The notes under the pieces: generated by a model
What the model saw: only the letters and a program-made list of their open reading frames with translations
Databases searched by the model: none
What the model was told of the DNA's origin: nothing
Translations under genes and position numbers: made by a program
Assembly (NCBI RefSeq): GCF_030144855.1
Contig: NC_082727.1
Span: 20,460,001-20,524,000, forward strand
Length of the DNA: 64,000 bases
Source of the DNA: Hypanus sabinus
Taxonomy: Eukaryota
Direction: 5' to 3'
In this document: in pieces, positions 702 to 61,864 of the stretch
Position numbering within the stretch: the first letter of the stretch is position 1
Layout of the letters: the number at the start of each line of letters is the position of its first letter

Positions 702-2792
702 GTAAGGGGGAACGGGGACGGTGAGTTAAGACCACTAAACCCACAACAGCACCATCCCCTTCTATTTAATCACTCGCAATTCCAACCCCTTCTCCATCGT
801 CAGAGTCCGGGAGCAATCCTTATTTCCTAACCTTCCTTGTTTGTTCTCTGAAATTATCAACGCGGGCACCGGGGCGGCATTTCCGCCAGGAATCGTCTTT
901 AGGATATTTTGGCAATGACGGTCAGGATTTATATCAATAGAATGTGATTTCTTTTTAATTAAAAAGAGATAGAACCAACCAATTTAAATTAAAAACTGAT
1001 TGGAATCGGTAAAACCAAGGGACAAAGATGATCTGATAATTATCCACAAACTCCCGCCTTCCAAACATTTAACACAATTAAAGAACTGACTGACCTGTAT
1101 TAAAGCAGGTCCGGAGTATCGACTAAACATCCCTCCATAATTCACGAAGACTTTATCTAAAACCCGAACGAATTAGTCCCCTTCGGAGCGACTGGGGTTG
1201 TTTGAAGTCCAGTATTTGTTTGGATTTTCTTTTTACTGATTAAGTTCACTCAGTAAAGATTTGTCCAAAAACTACTTCCAGAATTAATTCTTCAGTGAAA
1301 CCACTTATCTGCAAATATGGAGGTCTGAGAAGTTAAAATAATTATTACATTTGGTAATGATTTATTATTGTCACATGTAGCGAGACACGGTGAAAAGCTG
1401 GAGGCGAAATCGTAATTCAATATAAAACTGAATCGATTATCTACAAATTAATGTTAGCTTGTAAAATTCAAATACATCTCATACACGTTTTATTTTATGA
1501 AACTATAACGTACTTAAATGCATCCATAAAAATCTTCTTGTTTAATCACACATTAATGCTAAAAGTGTGTGATTTAATCACTGGATTTAAATGTAATAAT
1601 CTGTCGGGATAAATTGTGTTTTAAAACTGATAGTTAAAAACAGCACATAACACTAGTTCAGTGTCGTATGTTTATTAAACGAAACCTGTTTTAAAGACAA
1701 TGATTTTATAATTCAGTTTTTTTTTACAACGTGGATTTTGAAAGTGGGGAGTTATCAGTGTGGCCTTTTTATGAGACTGTACACAGGCCTCTCCGATGCC
1801 CCGGCTCGGCCTCTCTCGCCGCGCAACTCCCCGAATTTCTGCCGCTGCATTACCGAGAGAAGGCTGCGGATCCTTGGGCAGTTTCGCCGCTTCTGCTCGA
1901 GGATCCCACGGCACATTCGTCGTCCCCGGGCCGGGCCGGGCCGGGCCGGGCTGCCGCGCTGAAATGCGGGAGACGGGTGAAATATATTTTACTTAAAGAC
2001 TGTGATATTTCCCAATGGGTTTTAATAGAATATAAAAAGGGCTTCTTCCCCCTTCCTCGCCCACCCTGTCAAACAGCCCCGGGGTGCAGGGAGCCGAGGG
2101 CCGAGGGTGTACCGGTGCGGCAACAGGCCCGAAGTCTCCGCCTTGTAACTTTGTCTCAAACCTTTTCCCTCCAACCCACACTGCCTTTCTTTTCTCTCCA
2201 TTTCTCCTTCACGTCGCTTGTTCTTTACTGACCTGTAATCCCATATGTTTCATCAATTTCCCCACTCCTACTCGATCCCTCCCGAAACCTTTCCCGTTTT
2301 CGGCGTATTTAATTTTCTTACACTCGCTTTTGATAGATTGTGCCTACACCTATCTACCCCGTACCATTCTCTCTCTGTCCCCCAACACTCGCACTTCATC
2401 CGTCCCTCATTTTCTCTCTCCTTCCTCTCTCTTTGTATTTCTGTGCCCCCGCCCTTTTGTCCAACACCTCCCCATCCCCTTCACACTAACACTGACCCTT
2501 GAGTATTTATGGATAGTTTTGAGCCCAACAATTTGACATTTATTCATATCGAAGGGCGAAGGACCCTCACATTAAACACACGAAGAATGAATCAGGACGG
2601 CCAAGGAGGAAGGTATCTGCAGCCGGGTTGGTCTGTGAAATCATTAGTCCGTGATTTAAGTTCATTTTAAAGTGAAATATGGTGACTCATTGCCCCGCAG
2701 GACTGGGTGGCCATGCGCCCCAATGGCCGGGGATTCGCGACTCTGTCCGGGCTCCGAGATTCTCCTCATCACCCGCCCGTCCTCTTTTTCAG

Positions 2793-3030
2793 TGGCCCTC
2801 TCGCCATTCACCGTGACCCGGAGGATAGGGCACCCGTACCAAAACCGCACTCCGCCGAAGAAAAAGAAACCGCGGACCTCGTTCACGCGCCTCCAGATCT
2901 GCGAGCTGGAAAAGCGCTTTCATCGCCAGAAGTACCTGGCGTCGGCCGAGAGGGCAGCGCTGGCCAAGGCCCTGAAAATGACCGACGCTCAAGTGAAAAC
3001 CTGGTTTCAGAACAGGCGGACCAAGTGGAG
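2793..3030 (+). CDS. TLX1: TLX1 coding exon 2 (homeodomain)
   Basis: Acceptor cctctttttcAG at 2791-2792. Encodes [43 protein letters not shown]...[12 protein letters not shown]. Donor GGAG|GTAAGG; phases consistent with exons 1 and 3. Confidence 0.97.
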
Positions 3031-3649
3031 GTAAGGGCCGGGCTGGGACGAGACACAGGCCAAATCCCTGGGCTGAGAACTGTAGCCTTCCTTCTCCCTG
3101 CCTCGCCATTCCCCCGCCGGCCTCTTTCCCTCCTCAACCCTCACAGTAGCAAACGCGCCGACCAAGTGACTGATGGAAGTGAAGGGGGTCAGTCTGTATT
3201 TTGTCACAAAGGTTCTTAAAAAATCAGCATCTAAATGGGGTTGCGGGACCCGGCAACTGTGGCCGGCGATTGAACAGAATGGTGGTAACATCACTGCAGA
3301 ACTCCTTTCTACAGAAGCTGAAAAAGTTGTGTCAAACTTTCAGAACTTAGTTGGGCAATAGGGAACATTTTACACCGTCCTAAATACACTGGGATTAAGA
3401 GCAAGAGGAGGCCGCTCGGCTCTTCGAGGCTGATTTGCCATTTCATAGATTCATGGAACTCCACTGTCTCATCTATCCCAGAAACTCTTCCTCCCTCGCC
3501 TACACTCCCCCCCCACCCCCAGCCTTGGAAAGATGTAAGCTCTTTACTTCGATTGTCCTTTGAGGAAGACTGTCTTCTGGGCCGGGGTGGGGAGGTGGGA
3601 ACTGATAAATCGTCTAACCCCTGTTTAAATGGACGATAAACTCAAGAGA

Positions 3650-26215: not shown

Positions 26216-29200
26216 ACTTGATTGCAGAGTAAAGGGTTAATGGCATGATGGCATGATTCTTAGCAACGTGGAGGAACAAAGGGACAAAAGTGCATTCCAC
26301 CTCCCCCCACCCTTTCACCAGTTCTGTGCCACACCAACCTCAATGTCAGCTCGCTTAGGGATGCTGCTCCGAGCCAGCTGGCAACTTAGAGAACTTTCTA
26401 AAGGTCTACCCTTCAGGGAGACTATCAGTCTGAGGTGGAGGTATTTATAGAAAAACTGTATCAGGTAGCTTCATTCACAGAAAGCAGACATGGAAATGTA
26501 CAGTCCAAGCTAGCACCTTGGACAGGGGAGGGATCTAAGATCAGTCTAACTCTCCCCTCCCACACAACCCTCCATTTCTTTATCATCCATGTGCCAATCT
26601 ATTAAATGTCCCTAATGTATCTGCCTTACCATTACCCTTGGCAGGGTATTCCACACACCTGCCACTCTCTCTATTAAAAAAAACTAACTCCGATGTCCCC
26701 CTCCAATCACCTTAAATTATGCCCTCTCATATTAGTTAGTTAGCATGCATTGGGAGGGATCGAGCTGGCTATGAGTTACCTCACCCTGAGGCTTAACAGA
26801 ACCATCCAGGGGCTGGGGTAGAGCATTAGTCCATATCTGATTAGAATGCTTGATTCTCTCTTCTTCATTCACTTTCTTTCTGCCTCTCTCCTCTCCTCCT
26901 TCCCGTTTCCCAACGCTCTTGTTAACCGTCATTCTCGTTAACAATGTCCTGTCATTCTTTGTCACTCAGACTTACCTACCGCTATTCAAGCGCTCCATGT
27001 CAATTAGAGATTTAACAGATTATTATATCAGTCACGTTGAAAACTGAGGTGGTCAATAATCAAAACTGCATATCTGGGGCTCAATTTCTCTCACTCCTGA
27101 CAAATAAAACATTCCCACCCACGGAATTTCCTTTGCTTCATTGGTTGCTGTCAATCTCTCGCTATGTACATCTCAGCAGGGAGTATAAATTGGGTCTGTG
27201 CAGAAGGAAATCTTTTTGTCTAATCCTGCAGTCCCTGCAGCTTTTTAATACTAAAAGTAATAACTTATACAATCCTTTAAAACTGTGAAGACCACTTGTT
27301 ACAGAGTTCTCCCATCACATCCATGTCAGAATTTCAATGTTCAACTACAACCCATCAGATCAGTAAGCTCCAAGACTCAGATGATTCTTTAAAGTAACTT
27401 CTAAAAATGACATTCCAACAATCCACCCTTTTGTATGTTTTTAAGTTACTTTGTAAATATATATACTGGTCTATTAAAGGATTATAAAAGAATACAGAAC
27501 TCTAGGACGGTCTTGAACAACAAGCACAATCCCTGCAGTCAAATGACTATTTCTGCAGTGGGAGGGTTGACAGAACACAGTTGGAAAATTTACCTGTGTC
27601 TTATTCTTGTTGTGCCAGCCCTGTGGTGTGTGAGGGAGCAGTACAGAGAGAGTCTTACTCTGTATCTAACCCATACAGTCCTTGCCCTGGGATGGGGAGG
27701 GATAGGAAAGAGGGAGATACCCTACGATGTGACAGGTCAGTGGAGAAGAGACTTGCACTCCGTTTGACCTGTGCAGTATTCATCAAGTTTTTGGAAACAT
27801 TTTTGCCCAGTAGGACTGTTCCACTTCATGACAGTCCTCTACCAATGATGAAGGTTCATTCTCTCTCATTAGCGCTGCTCTCCAGTCATCGCTTCCTAGA
27901 AGACAAGCTGATTTGGCTTCACCAGCAGCTGACCCAGCGCGAGATGAGGAACTGCTACGTACTTGTTCTTGCAGAAACGTGGCTCCATGATGACATCCCA
28001 TGCATCATTAACCTTCAGACCATGCCACTCAGGGACTTGTGCTAATTTTATCCTTGTGCTATCATTGCCACAGGTGCTGTGAGTGACCATACGTATGGTG
28101 TTCTGCATCTTGCCGTTTCGTTTAGCTGAATATACTTTTGTATTATTGAATGACAATTAAACTTGAACTGGAACTTTATCTATTCTCTTTTGTTAGTTAC
28201 ATCTTGGCGCAGTAATCCTCCTGTGACCTTAAAGAAGATTTCCACAGACTCAGTAAGGCAACAGTAACCCCGATTAACTTTGAAAAGAATTTTAGGAAAA
28301 GATTTTAACAGTGCAATTGAAAGAAGTGTTATATTGCACTGATTTCCCATTATACCCTTTCATCTCCTGTGCGATTCAAGTGGACCAATCCCCTCCCATT
28401 TGCCTTCCCATTCACTTCAATTGTACAGATTCCTAATGGACCAATCTCATTCCCACTGGACGTAAAGCTGCAGAGGGCTGTAAACTCAGCAAGCTCGATC
28501 ACAAGTACTAGTCTCCCCACATCCAGGGCATCTTCAAAGGCAACATCCAATATTAAGGACCATCCACCAGCAAGGACTTGCCCTCTTATTACTACCACCA
28601 GGGAGGAAGTACAGGAGCCCCAGAGATGATGATTCTGATTCTCTGCACTCTTTTTCATTGTACAAAATCAAAATAGACCAAATATTTCCCTTTCTATTGC
28701 CCGTGGTCCTGTTCACCTCGACTGCTCATAGCCCTGCTCCATTCCCCATGTTCAGTAGGCTACATCTTGGTGTTTCTATTGAAAGATGAAGTGAGGCAAG
28801 GGCAAGTGATTCTTTATTTTTGTGGATCAGATACAAACTGAGCTGTTTGTGGACTGAGAATGCCCCTGTAATCCGAGGGTCTCTGAGAGTTGAATCGGCC
28901 CCTTCACCCGGTTGTTCTGATCTATATGTCGGGAGTTCTCTGGGAAAGGTAGCGGCTGATTTTCATGTCCTTATTCAGATTTCCTGTGCCCATTTGCTAA
29001 AGAATTCGATCAAAGCTCTAGGATTTATTTGGAGCTGGTATTTTGGCTCAGTAATGGGCTGTACTGTGCCCCTGTTAGATCTGCTGCTTGGCACACGGCA
29101 AGAGGGTTTGAAGGGTCTGCTCTCGAACCACCTGGTCTCCACAAAAATGGAAACTGCAAAGCAAAAATTTCAGAATTTATTGACCCTATTGTGTTGCATG

Positions 29201-33692: not shown

Positions 33693-33974
33693 GGAAGAAC
33701 AATCAAAATTCAGTGGTGGACTCACAAGATTGTTACTGCACAGAAGGAAGCCATTTGTCCATCAGCTCCATACTAGCAACTCTGACCATCCCCTCTCTTT
33801 CTCCACAGCCCTCACACATACCCACCCCTCTCACACTCACGAGTCATACAGAGATACAGGCCATTCAGCCCTTCACGTCTGCTCTGACCTTCAACCACAC
33901 AATCCCTACTGTGTGGTCAGCTCCAGACCACATTCTTGTCTTCTGCCAAATATATGAAACCCCTCTCCTTCTTA

Positions 33975-34500
33975 AACAATCCATAAACAGGGGCAGCTCC
34001 CCACCTATCAATAGGAACAAACCCCACGCACCAAAGGAACATTTCCCCCTGAAACAGTTCCCAATCCACCAATTGGAACTGACTCCACCCACAAATAGGA
34101 ACAGTTCCCAATCCACCAATTGGAACTGACTCCACCCACAAATAGGAACAGTTCCCAATCCACCAATTGGAACTGACTCCACCCACAAATAGGAACAGTT
34201 CCCAATCCACCAATTGGAACTGGCTCCACCCGCAAATAGGAACAGTTCCCATCCACGAAAATGAATATTTTCCCAACCACCATCAATACCAACAGCTCCC
34301 CACCCACCGCCAATAGAAACAATTCCCTCCAAAAATAGGGGCAGTTCCATCCCACCAATAGGAACCTCCCCACCCACCAACAGGATCTCTTCCCTGACCA
34401 CCAATAGGACTAGAAATAAACAATAACTTTATTCCTACTGAAATAAACAATTTCCCCACTCCACCAACAGGAACAGTGCCCACCCACGAATAGGGACCAT
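33975..34500. repeat. Minisatellite: 47-bp unit made of two ~23-bp subunits, degenerate flanks
   Basis: AATAGGAACAGTTCCCAATCCACCAATTGGAACTGACTCCACCCACA at 34094, 34141 and 34188. Confidence 0.9.
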
Positions 34501-34853: not shown

Positions 34854-35021
34854 CTGGCGTGGTCCCGTCCTCGTACCACGCTGATGTTCTCGGCTCCGAG
34901 CTGAGGGTGAAAGATGTTTATCTGGCTGTTGTCCCAAATAAACTTCACTATGGTAATGTCCCCCACGTCGAGCTCCACATCAATTACGGATGTGTACGTG
35001 GTGCCAGGATGGAGTTTAGTT
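34854..35021 (-). CDS. Pancreatic lipase-like gene, coding exon 11 (PLAT domain)
   Basis: TKLHPGTTYTSVIDVELDVGDITIVKFIWDNSQINIFHPQLGAENISVVRGRDHA; AG/GT boundaries; 168 nt, phase 2-2. Confidence 0.92.
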
Positions 35022-35897: not shown

Positions 35898-36009
35898 CTT
35901 GTGACCCTGTGCTGCCGGGAGTTTCCTTTAGTGCCATACACGGCAACGTTAATGAAACCGGACACTGAATGTGAACCGGAGAGTTTCACCGACACCTCGT
36001 AACGCCAGA
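35898..36009 (-). CDS. Pancreatic lipase-like gene, coding exon 10
   Basis: Manual translation WRYEVSVKLSGSHSVSGFINVAVYGTKGNSRQHRVT; acceptor ccacAG, donor AG|GTAAGC; 112 nt. Confidence 0.92.
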
Positions 36010-36834: not shown

Positions 36835-36964
36835 GTGCAAAAGGACTGGACTCGCCCGTGTTGAGTTGGAAGGTTTGGTGCAGCAGTCCTGGGGCAGGAC
36901 GATACTTCCCAATGTCATAGCCCATGTTGGGGCAGCCTTCAGAGGGGCACACGAAACAGTCCCC
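36835..36964 (-). CDS. Pancreatic lipase-like gene, coding exon 9
   Basis: GDCFVCPSEGCPNMGYDIGKYRPAPGLLHQTFQLNTGESSPFA; 130 nt; donor GTGAGT. Confidence 0.94.
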
Positions 36965-40324: not shown

Positions 40325-40443
40325 TGCCTGAAATTCCCGTTCACCGGCGCAGGAAAAGCCCTCAAACCCGTCTGGTGATCCCACACTCTCTGTGAAATAC
40401 TTCACAGCGCGGAAATGGTTGCAGGACAGAAAATTCTTTGTGC
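40325..40443 (-). CDS. Pancreatic lipase-like gene, coding exon 8 (end of lid, catalytic His)
   Basis: GTKNFLSCNHFRAVKYFTESVGSPDGFEGFSCAGEREFQA; 119 nt; donor GTAAGT. Confidence 0.94.
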
Positions 40444-41128: not shown

Positions 41129-41248
41129 CTTCCCAGATCCCGTCCACATCCAGGATGGTTGAGATGAGATTCTTCGAGCAGCCTGGCATGTTGTCGCCAC
41201 CATTTGGGTAGAAGTCCACGTGACCACAAGGATAGGTCATTCCAAACC
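41129..41248 (-). CDS. Pancreatic lipase-like gene, coding exon 7 (lid)
   Basis: [40 protein letters not shown]; 120 nt. Confidence 0.95.
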
Positions 41249-41687: not shown

Positions 41688-41807
41688 CTTTGCTGGGGTT
41701 CTTCAAGGAACCATCCGTGTGAATCACATCAACGAACAGTGCATCAGTGGGATCCAACCTCACCTCGAGAGGGGTGTTCTGGAAGTATGGGGCAACGGGA
41801 TCGAGGC
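41688..41807 (-). CDS. Pancreatic lipase-like gene, coding exon 6 (catalytic Asp)
   Basis: [40 protein letters not shown]; 120 nt. Confidence 0.95.
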
Positions 41808-42316
41808 CTGCAGAGTAATCTTGAATCAGTGTGATGTCCACAGCCTTCTGTTACAATCTAATCCTGGCTGTTACCCAGAGCCATTGCCGTGAACCTCAAA
41901 GTCCGAATTTATATCGAAGAGGGCTATTCAGCCCATTGATACTATGGCAAATCATAGAGCAGCCCCATTCATTTCCCCATACATACATTAGGGGCAATTT
42001 ACAGCAAGGTGATTAATTCCCTTACCCACATGGTGTCTGGTATGTGGGTGGAAAGTGGGGCACTGCAGGAGAGCATGCAGACTCCACACAGACAGCACTG
42101 GGGGTCAGGACTGAATCCATATTGCTGGAACTGTGTGTCTCCACTCACTATGCAGTCTATCCCCATTAATATCAAACAAACCTGCAATCCCCTCTGTAAA
42201 CAGTCCCGGTGAATTCCCCCACCCACCTTCTCCCTCATTTCGCCATCAGCCCTTCCTCCCAGTTTCCCATCCCATCACCAACCATCCAGAATCCAAGCCT
42301 GGGGAGAGAACATTAC

Positions 42317-42425
42317 CTGTAATCCGGGATATCCCTGGCTTCCTGCGTCCTACCTCACCAGCGGCGTGGGCACCCAGTCCATGCCCCACCAGGTATACAT
42401 CTGGCAAGGTGTAATTGTAGTTGCT
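42317..42425 (-). CDS. Pancreatic lipase-like gene, coding exon 5 (nucleophile elbow, Ser replaced by Gly)
   Basis: [36 protein letters not shown]; 109 nt; codon GGA at 42378-42380. Confidence 0.95.
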
Positions 42426-43036
42426 CTGTGGTGCACAAAGACAAAGAGGATGGTGAGCAGACACACCTCTGTTTCAGCACCCTAACTGGGAGCCCAAGCC
42501 CACCCCAATCTCTCTGTGAACTCCTTATGTGGCACGGTAGCATAGTGGTTAACATAACCATTACGCCATATTGCTTTCCAGTGGCTAAAGAGGAATCTAC
42601 AGAGATCCTCTTGTTTGGGGTTCAAATCCCAACATTTTCTGTCTGGAGTTTGTACGTTCTCCCTATGACTACATTTAGTTTCCTCTTGGAGCTCCAGTTT
42701 CCTCCCATCTTCCTAAAGTGTGCAAGTTAAGGTTAGTAAATTGTGGGCTTGCTATGTCGGTGCCGAAAGATTGGGTACTCTTGCGGGCTGTGCTCAGCAC
42801 GTCCTTGGACTCCGCTGGTCGTTGATACAAACTGGTCATTTCACTCTATGAATCAATATGTATGTGATAAATAAAACCGATTTCTAACCTCTGTTCTTCT
42901 GGCCATCATGCTAAACAACAAAGTCGTGCTCTGTGTGGAAAATTGGTGTGGAGGAATAATGGGAGGTGATCTCAGTAGAATAACCAGGAGAGTGAAATGC
43001 AGATTATCCGTCTGATTACATTTCGATAGCGTGTCC

Positions 43037-46378: not shown

Positions 46379-46513
46379 CTCCAGTGCATCGAGGAAGAAT
46401 GCAATTTCCGCTCCCACCACGCGGACGTTCTGTGCAGCCTGGCTAAACGCACATTGGGAGCCACCCATCCAGTCCACACCTATGCAGTTGACACCGTCCA
46501 CTTGTAGAATAGT
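46379..46513 (-). CDS. Pancreatic lipase-like gene, coding exon 4
   Basis: TILQVDGVNCIGVDWMGGSQCAFSQAAQNVRVVGAEIAFFLDALE; 135 nt; donor GTGAGT. Confidence 0.95.
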
Positions 46514-49847: not shown

Positions 49848-49973
49848 CTTGCACAGATCCACGATCCATTGGGAATCTCCGTTTTCCAGATGTCCGTGGA
49901 TGATCAGGACACTCTTCTGATCGGTGTTGAAGTTAGAGACAGCGACTGTCTGCGGATGTGTCCCGCTGATTTC
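49848..49973 (-). CDS. Pancreatic lipase-like gene, coding exon 3
   Basis: Manual translation EISGTHPQTVAVSNFNTDQKSVLIIHGHLENGDSQWIVDLCK; 126 nt, phase 0-0. Confidence 0.93.
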
Positions 49974-51688: not shown

Positions 51689-51849
51689 CTGAAAGTTGTC
51701 AGGGTTCTGCCTGGTGTAGAGCAGGAAACGGGTGCTGATTGTCTCAGGGCTCCAGGGGTCCCTGGTAACGGGTCTTTCCTTGATCCCTGTCCATGGGTAT
51801 CCAAGGGGGAAACAGCCCAGTCTATTGTAGCATATTTCATCCGGTTCAC
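51689..51849 (-). CDS. Pancreatic lipase-like gene, coding exon 2
   Basis: GEPDEICYNRLGCFPLGYPWTGIKERPVTRDPWSPETISTRFLLYTRQNPDNFQ; 161 nt. Confidence 0.95.
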
Positions 51850-53195: not shown

Positions 53196-53244
53196 CTTCG
53201 GCTTTGGTGAGAAGGAAAGTGATAGGGATCCACAGACTCAGCAT
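53196..53244 (-). CDS. Pancreatic lipase-like gene, coding exon 1 (signal peptide)
   Basis: MLSLWIPITFLLTKAE(G); acceptor tttctctttcAG directly before the ATG; donor G|GTAAC; phase matches the next exon. Confidence 0.88.
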
Positions 53245-59264: not shown

Positions 59265-60215
59265 ATCTTTCCCTCCCCCCCTTTCTGCTTTCCACAGGGA
59301 TCACTCCCTACGCAACTCCCTTGTCCATTTGTACCCCCCATCCCTTCCCACTGATCTCCCTCCTGGCACTTATCCTTGTAAGCGGAACAAGTGCGACACC
59401 TGCCCTTACCCTTCCTCCCTCACCACCATTCAGGGCCCCAGACAGTCCTTCCAGGTGAGGCGACACTTCACCTGTGAGTCGGCTGGTGTGATATACCGCG
59501 TCCGGTGCACCCGGTGTGGCCTTCTATATATTGGTGAGACCCGACACAGACTGGGAGACCATTTCACTGAATATCTACACTCCGTCCACCAGAGAAAGCA
59601 GGACCTCCCAGTGGCCACACATTTTAATTCCACAGCCCATTCCCATTCTGATATCTCTATCCATGGCCTCCTCTACTGTCAAGATGAAGCCACACTCAGG
59701 TTGGAGGAACAACACCTTATATGCCTTATATGGGTAGCCTCCAACCTGATGGCATGAACATTGAGTTCTCTAACTTCCATTAATGCCCCTCCTCCCCTTC
59801 TTACCCCACCCCTTATTTATTATTCCCCCCTTTTTTTTCTCTCTCTGCCCCTCTCACAATCACTCTTTGCCTGTTCTCCATCTCCCTCTGGTGCTCCCCT
59901 CCCCCCTTTTTTTCTCCCTAGACCTCCAGTCCCATGATCCTTTCCCTTCTCCAGCTCTGTATCCATTTTGCCAATCTCCTTTCCAGCTCTTAGCTTCACA
60001 TCTCCCAACCCCCCACCCGTCTTCTCCTATCATTTTGGATTTCCCCCTCCCCACTTTCAAATCTCTTACTATCTTATCTTTCAGTTAGTCCTAACGAAGG
60101 GTCTCGGTCCGAAATGTCGACTGTACTTCTTCCTATAGATACTGCCTGGCCTGCTGCGTTCCATCAGCATTTTGTGTGTGTTGCTTGAATTTCCAGCATC
60201 TGCAGATTTCCTCGT
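59265..60215 (+). mobile_element. Penelope-like retroelement 3' fragment (GIY-YIG endonuclease remnant plus tail)
   Basis: PCKRNKCDTC...FTCESAGVIYRVRCTRCGLLYIGETRHRL..HFTEY...PVATHFN...RLEEQHLI, then a pyrimidine-rich tract and hammerhead-like tail. Confidence 0.88.
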
Positions 60216-60504
60216 GCTTACAAAATCAGATTTATTATTATTGACATGCCACGAAATCTGTGTTTTTAAATAATGATTTGGTTTGGGGTATGACACTATT
60301 TGTATATTATTGGTGAACTTTTCCTGACCTTTCTCCATACCAAGTCTGACATGGGGGCCTGTCCCTTTAATTGATCGTCAAACTGTAAAGGAAGTTCGCT
60401 TCGGCCCTAACTATCGTAAAGAGTAGCGGGAACTGTGCCAGCACTACCGTAAAGCCGTTTCTATAAGTGTGGTCAGATGTCGTAAAAAGCGGCAGATGGT
60501 GAAA

Positions 60505-61097
60505 ATGGCGGCGGTGCCGGATCCGCCGAGTGACGGGCCGAGCCCGAGTCCCGCTGTCTCCGCGGCGCCCACCTCCACCCCCACTCCCGCCCCGGCCCCC
60601 GCCGTCGCCGCTGCTTCTCCGGCGCCCTCGCCGTCGCCCAGTCCGTCGCCAACGCTGGCGGTGAAGACGGAGACGGCGGAGAGCCCGGGGGAGGGAGGCA
60701 GGCCGGCGGCGGGTCCCGGCCCCGAGCTCAACGAGCGCCAGACCCTGCTCGCCGTGCTCCAGTTTCTGAAGAAGAACCGCTTCCGCGAGGCCGAGGAGAC
60801 ATTGCGGCGGGAGGCCAGCGTGCAGGATGCGCTGGACGACGCGCTGAGGACGGCCGGTCCCCGCGGCCCCGACTCCGTGCACCAGCCCGACGTCAGCTCG
60901 GTGCTGTCCGCCTACAGCAACCAGGGAGACCCCAGCCTCTACGAGGAGTACTACAGCGGCCTGAAGGCCTTCATCGAGGCGGCGCTGGACGCGCTGAAAG
61001 CCGAACTGGCCAGCCTGTTGTACCCGGTGTTCGTGCACCTATACCTGGAGCTGGTCTACAACGAACACGAACGTGAGGCCCGGCACTTCTTCCAGAG
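60505..61097 (+). CDS. TAF5: TFIID subunit 5, first coding exon (LisH and start of NTD2)
   Basis: aaaATGGCGGCG start in a CpG island (an in-frame ATG at 60496 is also possible); RQTLLAVLQFLKKNRFREAEETLRREA, QPDVSSVLSAY..QGDP..YEEYYSGLK, YPVFVHLYLELVYNEHE; donor AG|GTCAGC. Confidence 0.95.
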
Positions 61098-61864
61098 GTC
61101 AGCAAAGCCTCAATGTCTTACAAACCCCTTACCCGGAGCCCAAGCATGTCTGCCGCTTGTTCCACTGGACAACAATGGTGTATGGAACACTGTCAGCGTG
61201 TAAACCCATTCCTGGGGCCCAAACGAGTCTTGACACTTCAATATCTTAGCTATAGTACACAGTCTCACGGTGCGGTATGTGGAACACTGTGTCAGTGTTT
61301 AAATTCCTTACCGAGCATGAGTGGCGGCTCAGCAACACGTCACGGGTCAACGGTAGGGCACACAACCGTTTTCTGGAGGAACTCATTGGGTCGAACAGCA
61401 TCTGTGAGGGGAAAGCAACTGTCGGTAGTTCAGGCTGAAATCCTGCACTAGGACAGACAAGGTCCTGATGTAAGGCTTCAACCCAAAACAATCTGATCTA
61501 GCGCCTGGCACAGTGTGATGGGTAAATAACTTTGTGAAGCACAAAGAGGAGGCATAACATTTGTTCCACATCGAGAGTTAATGTAGTCTGGTGTCGGTGT
61601 TGCCTGTCTGCTTCTGTGTGAGGGTACACAGGCAGCTGGGAGTAGTTTCCAGCCTAGAACCCCTCCTGTTACTAGATCAAGCCCTTGCTCTGTGAATACA
61701 CACAGTGCTGGAGAAACTCAGGCCAGGCAACGTCTATAGGGGGAAATAAACAGTAAAGAAAGGGGAGGATGCCAGAATCAGAAAGTTGGGGGAAGGGAAG
61801 GACTACAAGCTGGCAGAGATGAATCATAAACACAGAGTTTGTGCAGATGCTGGAAATGCAGAGC

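Follow-up and report, generated by a model that had tools for sequence, protein, structure and literature searches.

A conserved lipase gene of rays and skates, predicted to encode a pseudoenzyme with glycine in place of the catalytic serine

Structure and surroundings of the lipase gene

The window analysed here, a stretch of 64,000 nt from Hypanus sabinus, contains a single-copy lipase gene flanked by a TLX1-type homeobox exon and by the first exon of TAF5, which encodes LisH and NTD2 motifs and is arranged head to head with the lipase gene (Table 1). An earlier note on this DNA, made from the letters alone, had placed the gene between TLX1 and TAF5, and both neighbouring exons were identified. 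TAF5, recognized by its Pfam domains, likewise lies upstream of the orthologue and in the opposite orientation in Amblyraja and Mobula, the two species checked; the recorded neighbour gene of the Mustelus orthologue carries no Pfam annotation. Between the lipase start and TAF5 lies an ORF with Cys-rich and GIY-YIG-like stretches that is compatible with a Penelope-like element.

The lipase gene is complete. It consists of 12 coding exons running from 53244 to 29075 on the minus strand, all with AG/GT borders, which together give 1428 nt and an uninterrupted frame of 475 aa. The ten internal exons were traced through open frames, Pfam positions and splice sites. Exon 1 was located by searching for an ATG followed by a hydrophobic peptide and a phase-1 donor, and exon 12 by tblastn with the C-termini of orthologues and an AG acceptor; with this exon the frame closes at 1428 nt. 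The 11 exons of the earlier note (1349 nt, in frame and with GT-AG sites) were reproduced exactly as 49+1300 nt, all AG/GT. The number of exons had to be corrected: the terminal exon 12, which sits 5.7 kb downstream of exon 11 and is absent from the NCBI model, had been missed. For the same reason the gene encodes not five disulfide pairs and most of the PLAT domain but the whole domain and all 12 disulfide cysteines (six pairs), the sixth pair and the end of PLAT being supplied by exon 12.

The exons cover positions 2-336 of the Pfam Lipase profile PF00151, with the segment 177-215, in exon 6, placed by alignment, and PF01477 (PLAT) was matched as well. The gene thus has the layout typical of the pancreatic lipase family, with an alpha/beta-hydrolase lipase domain at the N-terminal end and PLAT at the C-terminal end, and one of its orthologues aligns end to end with the solved PNLIP, PLRP1 and PLRP2 (E = 1e-165 to 1e-173). 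Asp176 and His263 of the catalytic triad, the lid, in which 23 residues separate Cys237 from Cys261, and the RLDPTD Ca site (R190/D192/D195), all reported as retained in the earlier note, were found in the translation. The N-termini of the orthologues in Pristis, Narcine and Amblyraja match the hydrophobic peptide of exon 1, and we infer from this homology that it is a signal peptide and that the protein is secreted.

Table 1. Exons of the lipase gene and further features of the window
Feature	Position	Strand	Content
TLX1-type homeobox exon	2660..3031	+	
Exon 12, 79 nt including TAA stop (29077-29075)	29075..29153	-	last PLAT strand; FHFCG...LLPC disulfide pair
Open frames in intron 11	33868..34428	-	repeated unit of ~45 residues
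Exon 11, 168 nt	34854..35021	-	PLAT; conserved Lys of VKF(I/L)W; beta5' loop
Exon 10, 112 nt	35898..36009	-	start of PLAT (colipase-binding type) domain
Exon 9, 130 nt	36835..36964	-	end of lipase domain; Cys296/299/304
Exon 8, 119 nt	40325..40443	-	end of lid; Cys261; His263 (40417-40415)
Exon 7, 120 nt	41129..41248	-	remaining beta9 loop; clade-specific Cys221; Cys237; most of lid
Exon 6, 120 nt	41688..41807	-	Asp176 (41802-41800); Ca-site RLDPTD; start of beta9 loop
Batoid-specific residues in exon 6	41793-41791; 41691-41689	-	Ala179; Lys213 (beta9 loop)
Interspersed repeat	42072..42138		high copy; intron beside exon 5
Exon 5, 109 nt	42317..42425	-	nucleophile elbow GHGLG; Gly codon GGA (42378..42380)
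Interspersed repeat	42474..42808		high copy; intron beside exon 5
Exon 4, 135 nt	46379..46513	-	Pfam positions, splice sites
Exon 3, 126 nt	49848..49973	-	beta5 loop; oxyanion-hole Phe77 = His (codon 49892-49890)
Exon 2, 161 nt	51689..51849	-	mature N-terminus; first disulfide pair; Pfam Lipase 2-56; AG/GT
Exon 1, 49 nt	53196..53244	-	start codon; signal-peptide-like hydrophobic N-terminus (MLSLWIPITFLLTKAE + 1 nt); GT donor
ORF between lipase start and TAF5	59329..59757	+	Cys-rich and GIY-YIG-like stretches
TAF5 exon 1	60469..61203	+	LisH and NTD2 motifs

Over 433 residues, the predicted protein does not differ from the NCBI model 'pancreatic triacylglycerol lipase-like [Hypanus sabinus]'. 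That model has wrong first and last exons and contains four extra residues (SVIP), which stem from an alternative acceptor ahead of exon 11, and the NCBI model of Mobula birostris likewise misses the genuine signal-peptide and last exons; both run instead into flanking sequence or other exons. These mis-built ends could reflect thin RNA support. Exon sizes are equal to those of the window for 11 of 12 exons in Pristis and Amblyraja and for 10 of 12 in Narcine and Heptranchias. Exon 2 comprises 155 nt in Narcine and Heptranchias (161 nt in the window), and the last exon 70 nt versus 79 nt.

Two peculiarities concern the introns. The Heptranchias orthologue spans 69 kb, with an intron 7 of ~50 kb (24309-74222 of its locus) compared with 0.7-4 kb in rays. 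The long open frames within intron 11 of the window, which separates exons 11 and 12, consist of a repeated unit (…WELFLFVGGVSSNWWIGNCSYLWVESVPIGGLGTVPICGWSQFQLVD…) and resemble a tandem DNA repeat.

The nucleophile codon and its distribution among elasmobranchs

Translation of the reverse complement of exon 5 gives a 36-residue exon with AG/GT borders that contains VGHGLGAH, the codons of the elbow being GGG CAT GGA CTG GGT on the minus strand. The exon corresponds to positions 139-177 of the PF00151 profile, and the Gly encoded by GGA aligns opposite the catalytic Ser of GHSLGAH in the solved pancreatic lipases. It occupies the position of Ser152 (residue 173 of the precursor), so that Ser152 within GxSxG, the mark of an active lipase, is absent from the ray protein, which has GHGLG rather than GHSLG.

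We checked this codon in contigs assembled from sequencing runs of relatives with ~97% identical DNA (~3% diverged from the window); the matching DNA assemblies in the sequencing-run index carried the labels of at least four different organisms. GGA was unchanged in the contigs of five other runs (X1, X2, X3, X5 and X7). Over 42290-42450 the contigs of X1, X2, X3 and X5 differed from the window only by 42336 T>C (all four) and 42363 G>A (X1 and X3), both synonymous, and in X7 a single 273-nt contig covers the codon with one difference. Three further genomes, those of Pristis, Narcine and Amblyraja, likewise have GGA, Heptranchias has GGT, and the Mobula protein model also carries Gly at the nucleophile position. 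The recurrence of GGA in five runs of relatives and in three other batoid genomes excludes a base-calling or assembly error, and the probability that the codon is such an artefact is negligible. The earlier note had proposed the change from GHSLG to GHGLG and had named a Ser codon in reads as evidence against it; translation, alignment and the contigs of the five runs, from ~97%-identical relatives, all yield Gly. Its argument that GGA is at least two substitutions away from any Ser codon holds for the distance to AGY, but only one of these two steps is nonsynonymous (AGY to GGY).

The introns on both sides of exon 5 carry high-copy interspersed repeats, for which the assembler depth was in the thousands in all four runs, with many chimeric joints. 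The more distant runs X8-X20, considered as further holders of the gene, were rejected: their matches vanished once the query no longer included the intronic repeat at 42.47-42.81 kb, which indicates that they contain the repeat and not the lipase gene.

A search of a set of 5.8 billion proteins with the open frame of exon 5 gave no match, and an exhaustive protein search with exon 2 returned nothing above 63% identity. Orthologues were gathered using the Heptranchias protein as the query, which had itself surfaced in a search from a GHGLG-bearing frog protein. That protein, from Discoglossus pictus, was discarded as an orthologue; it belongs to a frog group of mostly ~347-aa proteins that are PLAT-less. 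The Heptranchias query retrieved a tight elasmobranch group with 71-83% identity to it. In a maximum-likelihood (ML) tree of 51 family members, these orthologues and the window sequence form a clade with support of 100/100, whose sister is a sturgeon sequence, and the batoids form a subclade with the same support (100/100). Mammalian PNLIP, PLRP1 and PLRP2 branch apart from it, within a tetrapod clade. A second clade comprises elasmobranch and chimaera 'PLRP2-like' proteins that are ~50% identical to the ray gene and keep the triad; elasmobranchs have two pancreatic-lipase paralogues. Both lie on one chromosome, 12.6 Mb apart in Pristis (CM019866.1) and 14.3 Mb apart in Heptranchias (CM068657.1). 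On human chromosome 10, TAF5 is separated from the PNLIP cluster by a distance similar to these 12-14 Mb.

Gly was present in all five batoids, namely Hypanus, Mobula, Pristis, Narcine and Amblyraja, with each of the four extant batoid orders represented, and in the sevengill shark Heptranchias, whose protein is on record on two contigs. Six other sharks (Pristiophorus, Heterodontus, Hemiscyllium, Scyliorhinus, Carcharodon and Mustelus) have Ser. The Gly that the earlier note proposed to look for in other rays and sharks is thus found in every batoid order; among the sharks it is present in Heptranchias, with its GGT codon, but not in the six that keep Ser.

Because rays, skates, sawfish and electric rays share Gly, we place the substitution in their common ancestor. 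The Gly/Ser pattern requires a minimum of two changes on the tree, and an approximately unbiased (AU) test did not reject a tree with all Gly sequences constrained to one clade (p = 0.10). The monophyly of sharks is accepted, and the Heptranchias protein is 83% identical to that of Ser-bearing Pristiophorus versus 71-74% to those of rays. Shark phylogeny, these identities and the different Gly codons (GGT versus GGA) lead us to read the pattern as two probable losses, one on the batoid stem and a second one in the Heptranchias lineage. The Heptranchias substitution suggests that catalysis is dispensable for the main role of this paralogue more widely.

Selection and residue changes in the Gly-bearing proteins

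The coding sequences of Pristis, Narcine, Amblyraja and Heptranchias were recovered by threading the annotated proteins onto the respective loci. Pairwise Nei-Gojobori dN/dS within the set of five Gly-bearing genes was 0.13-0.18 at dS of 0.5-1.3, and the codon-model ML estimate of omega was 0.164. Fixing omega at 1 cost 285 log-likelihood units (2ΔlnL = 569), which rejects neutrality. For the active paralogue, omega was 0.24 between Pristis and Heptranchias, a rough value since the Heptranchias model has a spurious N-terminal extension. Among the ~3%-diverged relatives, exons 5-7 differ at 4 sites in 349 nt (three of the four synonymous) and introns at ~3%, a divergence ~3.5 times lower in exons than in introns. 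Invariant columns make up 70% of the lipase domain in batoids, 63% in Ser-bearing sharks and 64% in the active paralogue; by this measure the lipase domain of batoids shows no sign of relaxation.

These values bear on whether the gene might be a pseudogene or a decaying relic that is out of use. The exons were sought in the RNA runs of the sequencing-run index, none of which contains exons of the ray gene, and the NCBI models of two species are mis-built at both ends; both observations would fit a relic. However, the frame of 475 aa is intact over 12 canonical exons, it is also intact in four further genomes with conserved exon structure, and a neutral frame would not survive the synonymous divergence of 0.5-1.0 between batoid orders. 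Given the intact frame and the strong purifying selection (omega 0.16, neutrality rejected), we conclude that the gene is not a pseudogene, for which very little probability remains. The earlier note had set a dN/dS below 1 against a value near 1 as the sign of a young pseudogene, and ~0.16, with omega = 1 rejected, is clearly of the former kind.

Several residue changes are clade-wide and include the Ser-bearing sharks. The beta5 loop is LENGD instead of IDKGE (LEHGD in Narcine and Scyliorhinus, LKNGD in Mobula), Phe77 and Cys181 are both replaced by Tyr, and a new cysteine is present at position 221. In most clade members, K, N and V stand in place of the lid-anchor residues R256, D257 and Y267. 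Only five sites are fixed in batoids relative to all Ser-bearing sharks, namely S152G, E179A, A220P, I241L and S271T, of which E179A adjoins Asp176, A220P falls in the beta9 loop and I241L in the lid. In addition, the beta9 loop of all batoids has Lys213, a position that is hydrophobic in other members, and the oxyanion position Tyr77 is changed to His in three batoids (Hypanus, Mobula and Pristis). Asp176 and His263 do not vary among the six Gly-bearing proteins, and the PLAT domain retains the conserved Lys of VKF(I/L)W, N365/Q368 and a hydrophobic beta5' loop. As R256, D257 and Y267 are altered throughout the clade and Lys213 makes the beta9 loop of batoids more polar, interface or colipase-lid contacts may differ from those of PLRP1.

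A further change lies close to the elbow. Ser144 (42402-42404 on the minus strand; precursor residue 165) is invariant in 18 of 18 Ser-bearing family members examined. Pro occupies this position in Hypanus, Mobula, Pristis, Narcine and Heptranchias; Amblyraja does not have Pro. Ser144Pro thus co-occurs with Ser152Gly in two lineages.

Relation to known lipases and possible function

Mammalian PLRP1 is likewise a two-domain member of the pancreatic lipase family that is inactive and yet retained, and it shares with the ray protein the Val after Asp-Pro (GLDPV...). In PLRP1 the Ser-Asp-His triad is complete, and Val179/Ala181 are regarded as the cause of its inactivity. The ray protein, ~51% identical to PLRP1, differs in having no nucleophile; the Val is kept and the second site is Pro rather than Ala, so that neither the inactivating pair nor the intact triad of PLRP1 is matched. 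Several orthologues of the ray gene are labelled 'inactive pancreatic lipase-related protein 1-like' by NCBI. However, the ray gene does not group with mammalian PLRP1 and is not a 1:1 orthologue of PNLIPRP1, because mammalian PNLIP, PLRP1 and PLRP2 form a tetrapod clade of their own. The separate position of the two clades agrees with the suggestion of the earlier note that the Ser-less homologue arose independently of PNLIPRP1.

The closest Ser-bearing comparison is with the orthologues of the six shark genera, which fall in the same 100/100 clade and are 70-74% identical to the ray protein. They share the LENGD beta5 loop, Tyr77, Cys221, K256/N257/V267 and Val or Ile at 178, but keep GHSLG and are free of the batoid S152G, E179A, A220P, I241L, S271T and Lys213. 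The active 'PLRP2-like' paralogue belongs to the same family, with the same domain layout, in the same species and on the same chromosome; at ~50% identity it differs in its intact triad and in its classical beta5 loop, lid-anchor and beta9 residues. Its activity was shown biochemically for stingray SPL and smooth-hound SmDL (PMC7094207, PMC3098174). We assign these digestive lipases to the 'PLRP2-like' clade judging by the reported 68% identity to a Callorhinchus lipase (PMC7094207).

In the ray gene an essential residue is missing, the gene is intact and its sequence is under purifying selection, the combination expected of a pseudoenzyme. To our knowledge, the catalytic Ser is essential in every characterised member of the pancreatic lipase family, and an alpha/beta-hydrolase lipase without a nucleophile cannot form the acyl-enzyme. 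We conclude that the ray protein is not a serine lipase, as it is devoid of the nucleophile for this intermediate, and that the gene is, on the evidence of its sequence, an old and conserved pseudoenzyme gene in which Gly has replaced the catalytic Ser. The core claim of the earlier note, an intact lipase homologue without a nucleophile, is upheld by the codon, the 475-aa frame, the Gly in four orders and the dN/dS of ~0.16.

The protein might still be a hydrolase or a transferase that uses another nucleophile or an activated water, which would account for the invariance of Asp176 and His263 in the six Gly-bearing proteins and for which the clade-specific Cys221 in the beta9 loop could be invoked. 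We consider this highly improbable. No substitute nucleophile residue is present at the elbow, and Cys221 cannot be a compensation because it also occurs in Ser-bearing sharks. The change of the oxyanion Tyr to His in three batoids, together with Lys213, looks like a loss of machinery rather than a rewiring, and the requirement for Ser in all characterised members of the family is established.

The ray gene therefore calls for a role without catalysis, and we think it probable that it encodes a conserved non-catalytic binding protein. Ser was replaced by Gly in the batoid ancestor, and the whole protein has since remained under strong purifying selection. The protein would be secreted, probably in the pancreas or intestine, and would act by binding colipase and/or the lipid-water interface without hydrolysis. 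The active paralogous digestive lipase would thereby be modulated, in the manner reported for mammalian PLRP1. Binding of colipase or the interface fits the sequence because the lid, six disulfides, Ca site, Asp176, His263, colipase-contact Lys and beta5' loop are all kept. PLRP1 was described as being without activity, binding colipase and acting as a competitive inhibitor that lowers pancreatic lipase activity (PMC6386725). Colipase and a colipase-activated lipase exist in stingrays (PMC3098174), and the pancreas of the catshark, a Ser-bearing species, expresses 'Pnliprp1', 'Pnliprp2' and colipase (PMC4362833); we assumed that the catshark 'Pnliprp1' transcript is the orthologue of the ray gene. 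By analogy with PLRP1, competition of the ray protein for colipase is conceivable, although we hold this specific step to be doubtful. Only tentatively can the proposal be widened to all rays and skates keeping a dead lipase as a regulator of fat digestion, for example by sequestration of colipase or occupancy of the lipid interface, with a recurrence in the sevengill shark.

Alternatively, the protein may have a non-digestive role as a lipid-binding or carrier protein in the liver, the yolk or reproductive tract, the blood or the skin, unrelated to colipase and comparable to the yolk proteins of Diptera. Retention of the hydrophobic pocket framework, lid and PLAT domain would suit a carrier, the RNA runs in the index provide no tie to ray pancreas, and the lid-anchor residues for the classical colipase-lid contacts are altered. 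On the other hand, of the two paralogues of elasmobranchs, two, named Pnliprp1 and Pnliprp2, were reported from catshark pancreas (PMC4362833), and conservation extends to the colipase-contact Lys and the beta5' loop. Moreover, Gly is common to egg-laying skates and live-bearing rays, and it is therefore not tied to reproductive mode. Taken together, we regard a non-digestive role as unlikely, and binding of colipase and/or the interface as the preferred reading.

In the full-text literature on PLRPs, pseudoenzymes, stingray lipase and colipase, and elasmobranch PNLIPRP1, we found no description of the Ser to Gly substitution, and a comparative study reported that the triad was conserved in all species it examined (PMC9386070). 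Dead lipase homologues as such are already known; what sets this case apart is the conservation at the level of orders, the parallel loss in a shark and the availability of comparable Ser and Gly forms. The nucleophile has been lost outright, yet the gene is conserved as tightly as its active sister across all orders of rays and skates. This is strong comparative evidence that proteins of the pancreatic lipase type can have a selected non-catalytic function. Mammalian PLRP1 has been puzzling since it is inactive with an intact triad, and the ray gene offers a clean natural case, in which the batoid Gly and shark Ser forms of one gene provide a tractable comparison. If the proposed regulatory role is correct, lipase antagonists of the PLRP1 type would have originated a second time, independently, in vertebrates, in this case with an unambiguous knockout of catalysis, and the ray gene would provide a clean natural test system for the long-unclear role of non-catalytic PLRP-type proteins. 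Public annotation names these proteins 'pancreatic triacylglycerol lipase-like' or 'PLRP2-like'. When digestive lipases are counted in ray genomes, the Gly-bearing gene should be left out.

Other pancreatic-lipase-like proteins with GHGLG were found in Discoglossus pictus, Microcaecilia unicolor and Ciona intestinalis, and all three represent events unrelated to that in elasmobranchs. The Discoglossus protein also has Asn in place of Asp176, the Microcaecilia model is a 225-aa fragment, and the Ciona protein is without a lid. Loss of the nucleophile appears to recur in the pancreatic lipase family. On a separate branch, the dipteran yolk proteins are lipase-family proteins that have lost the nucleophile as well.
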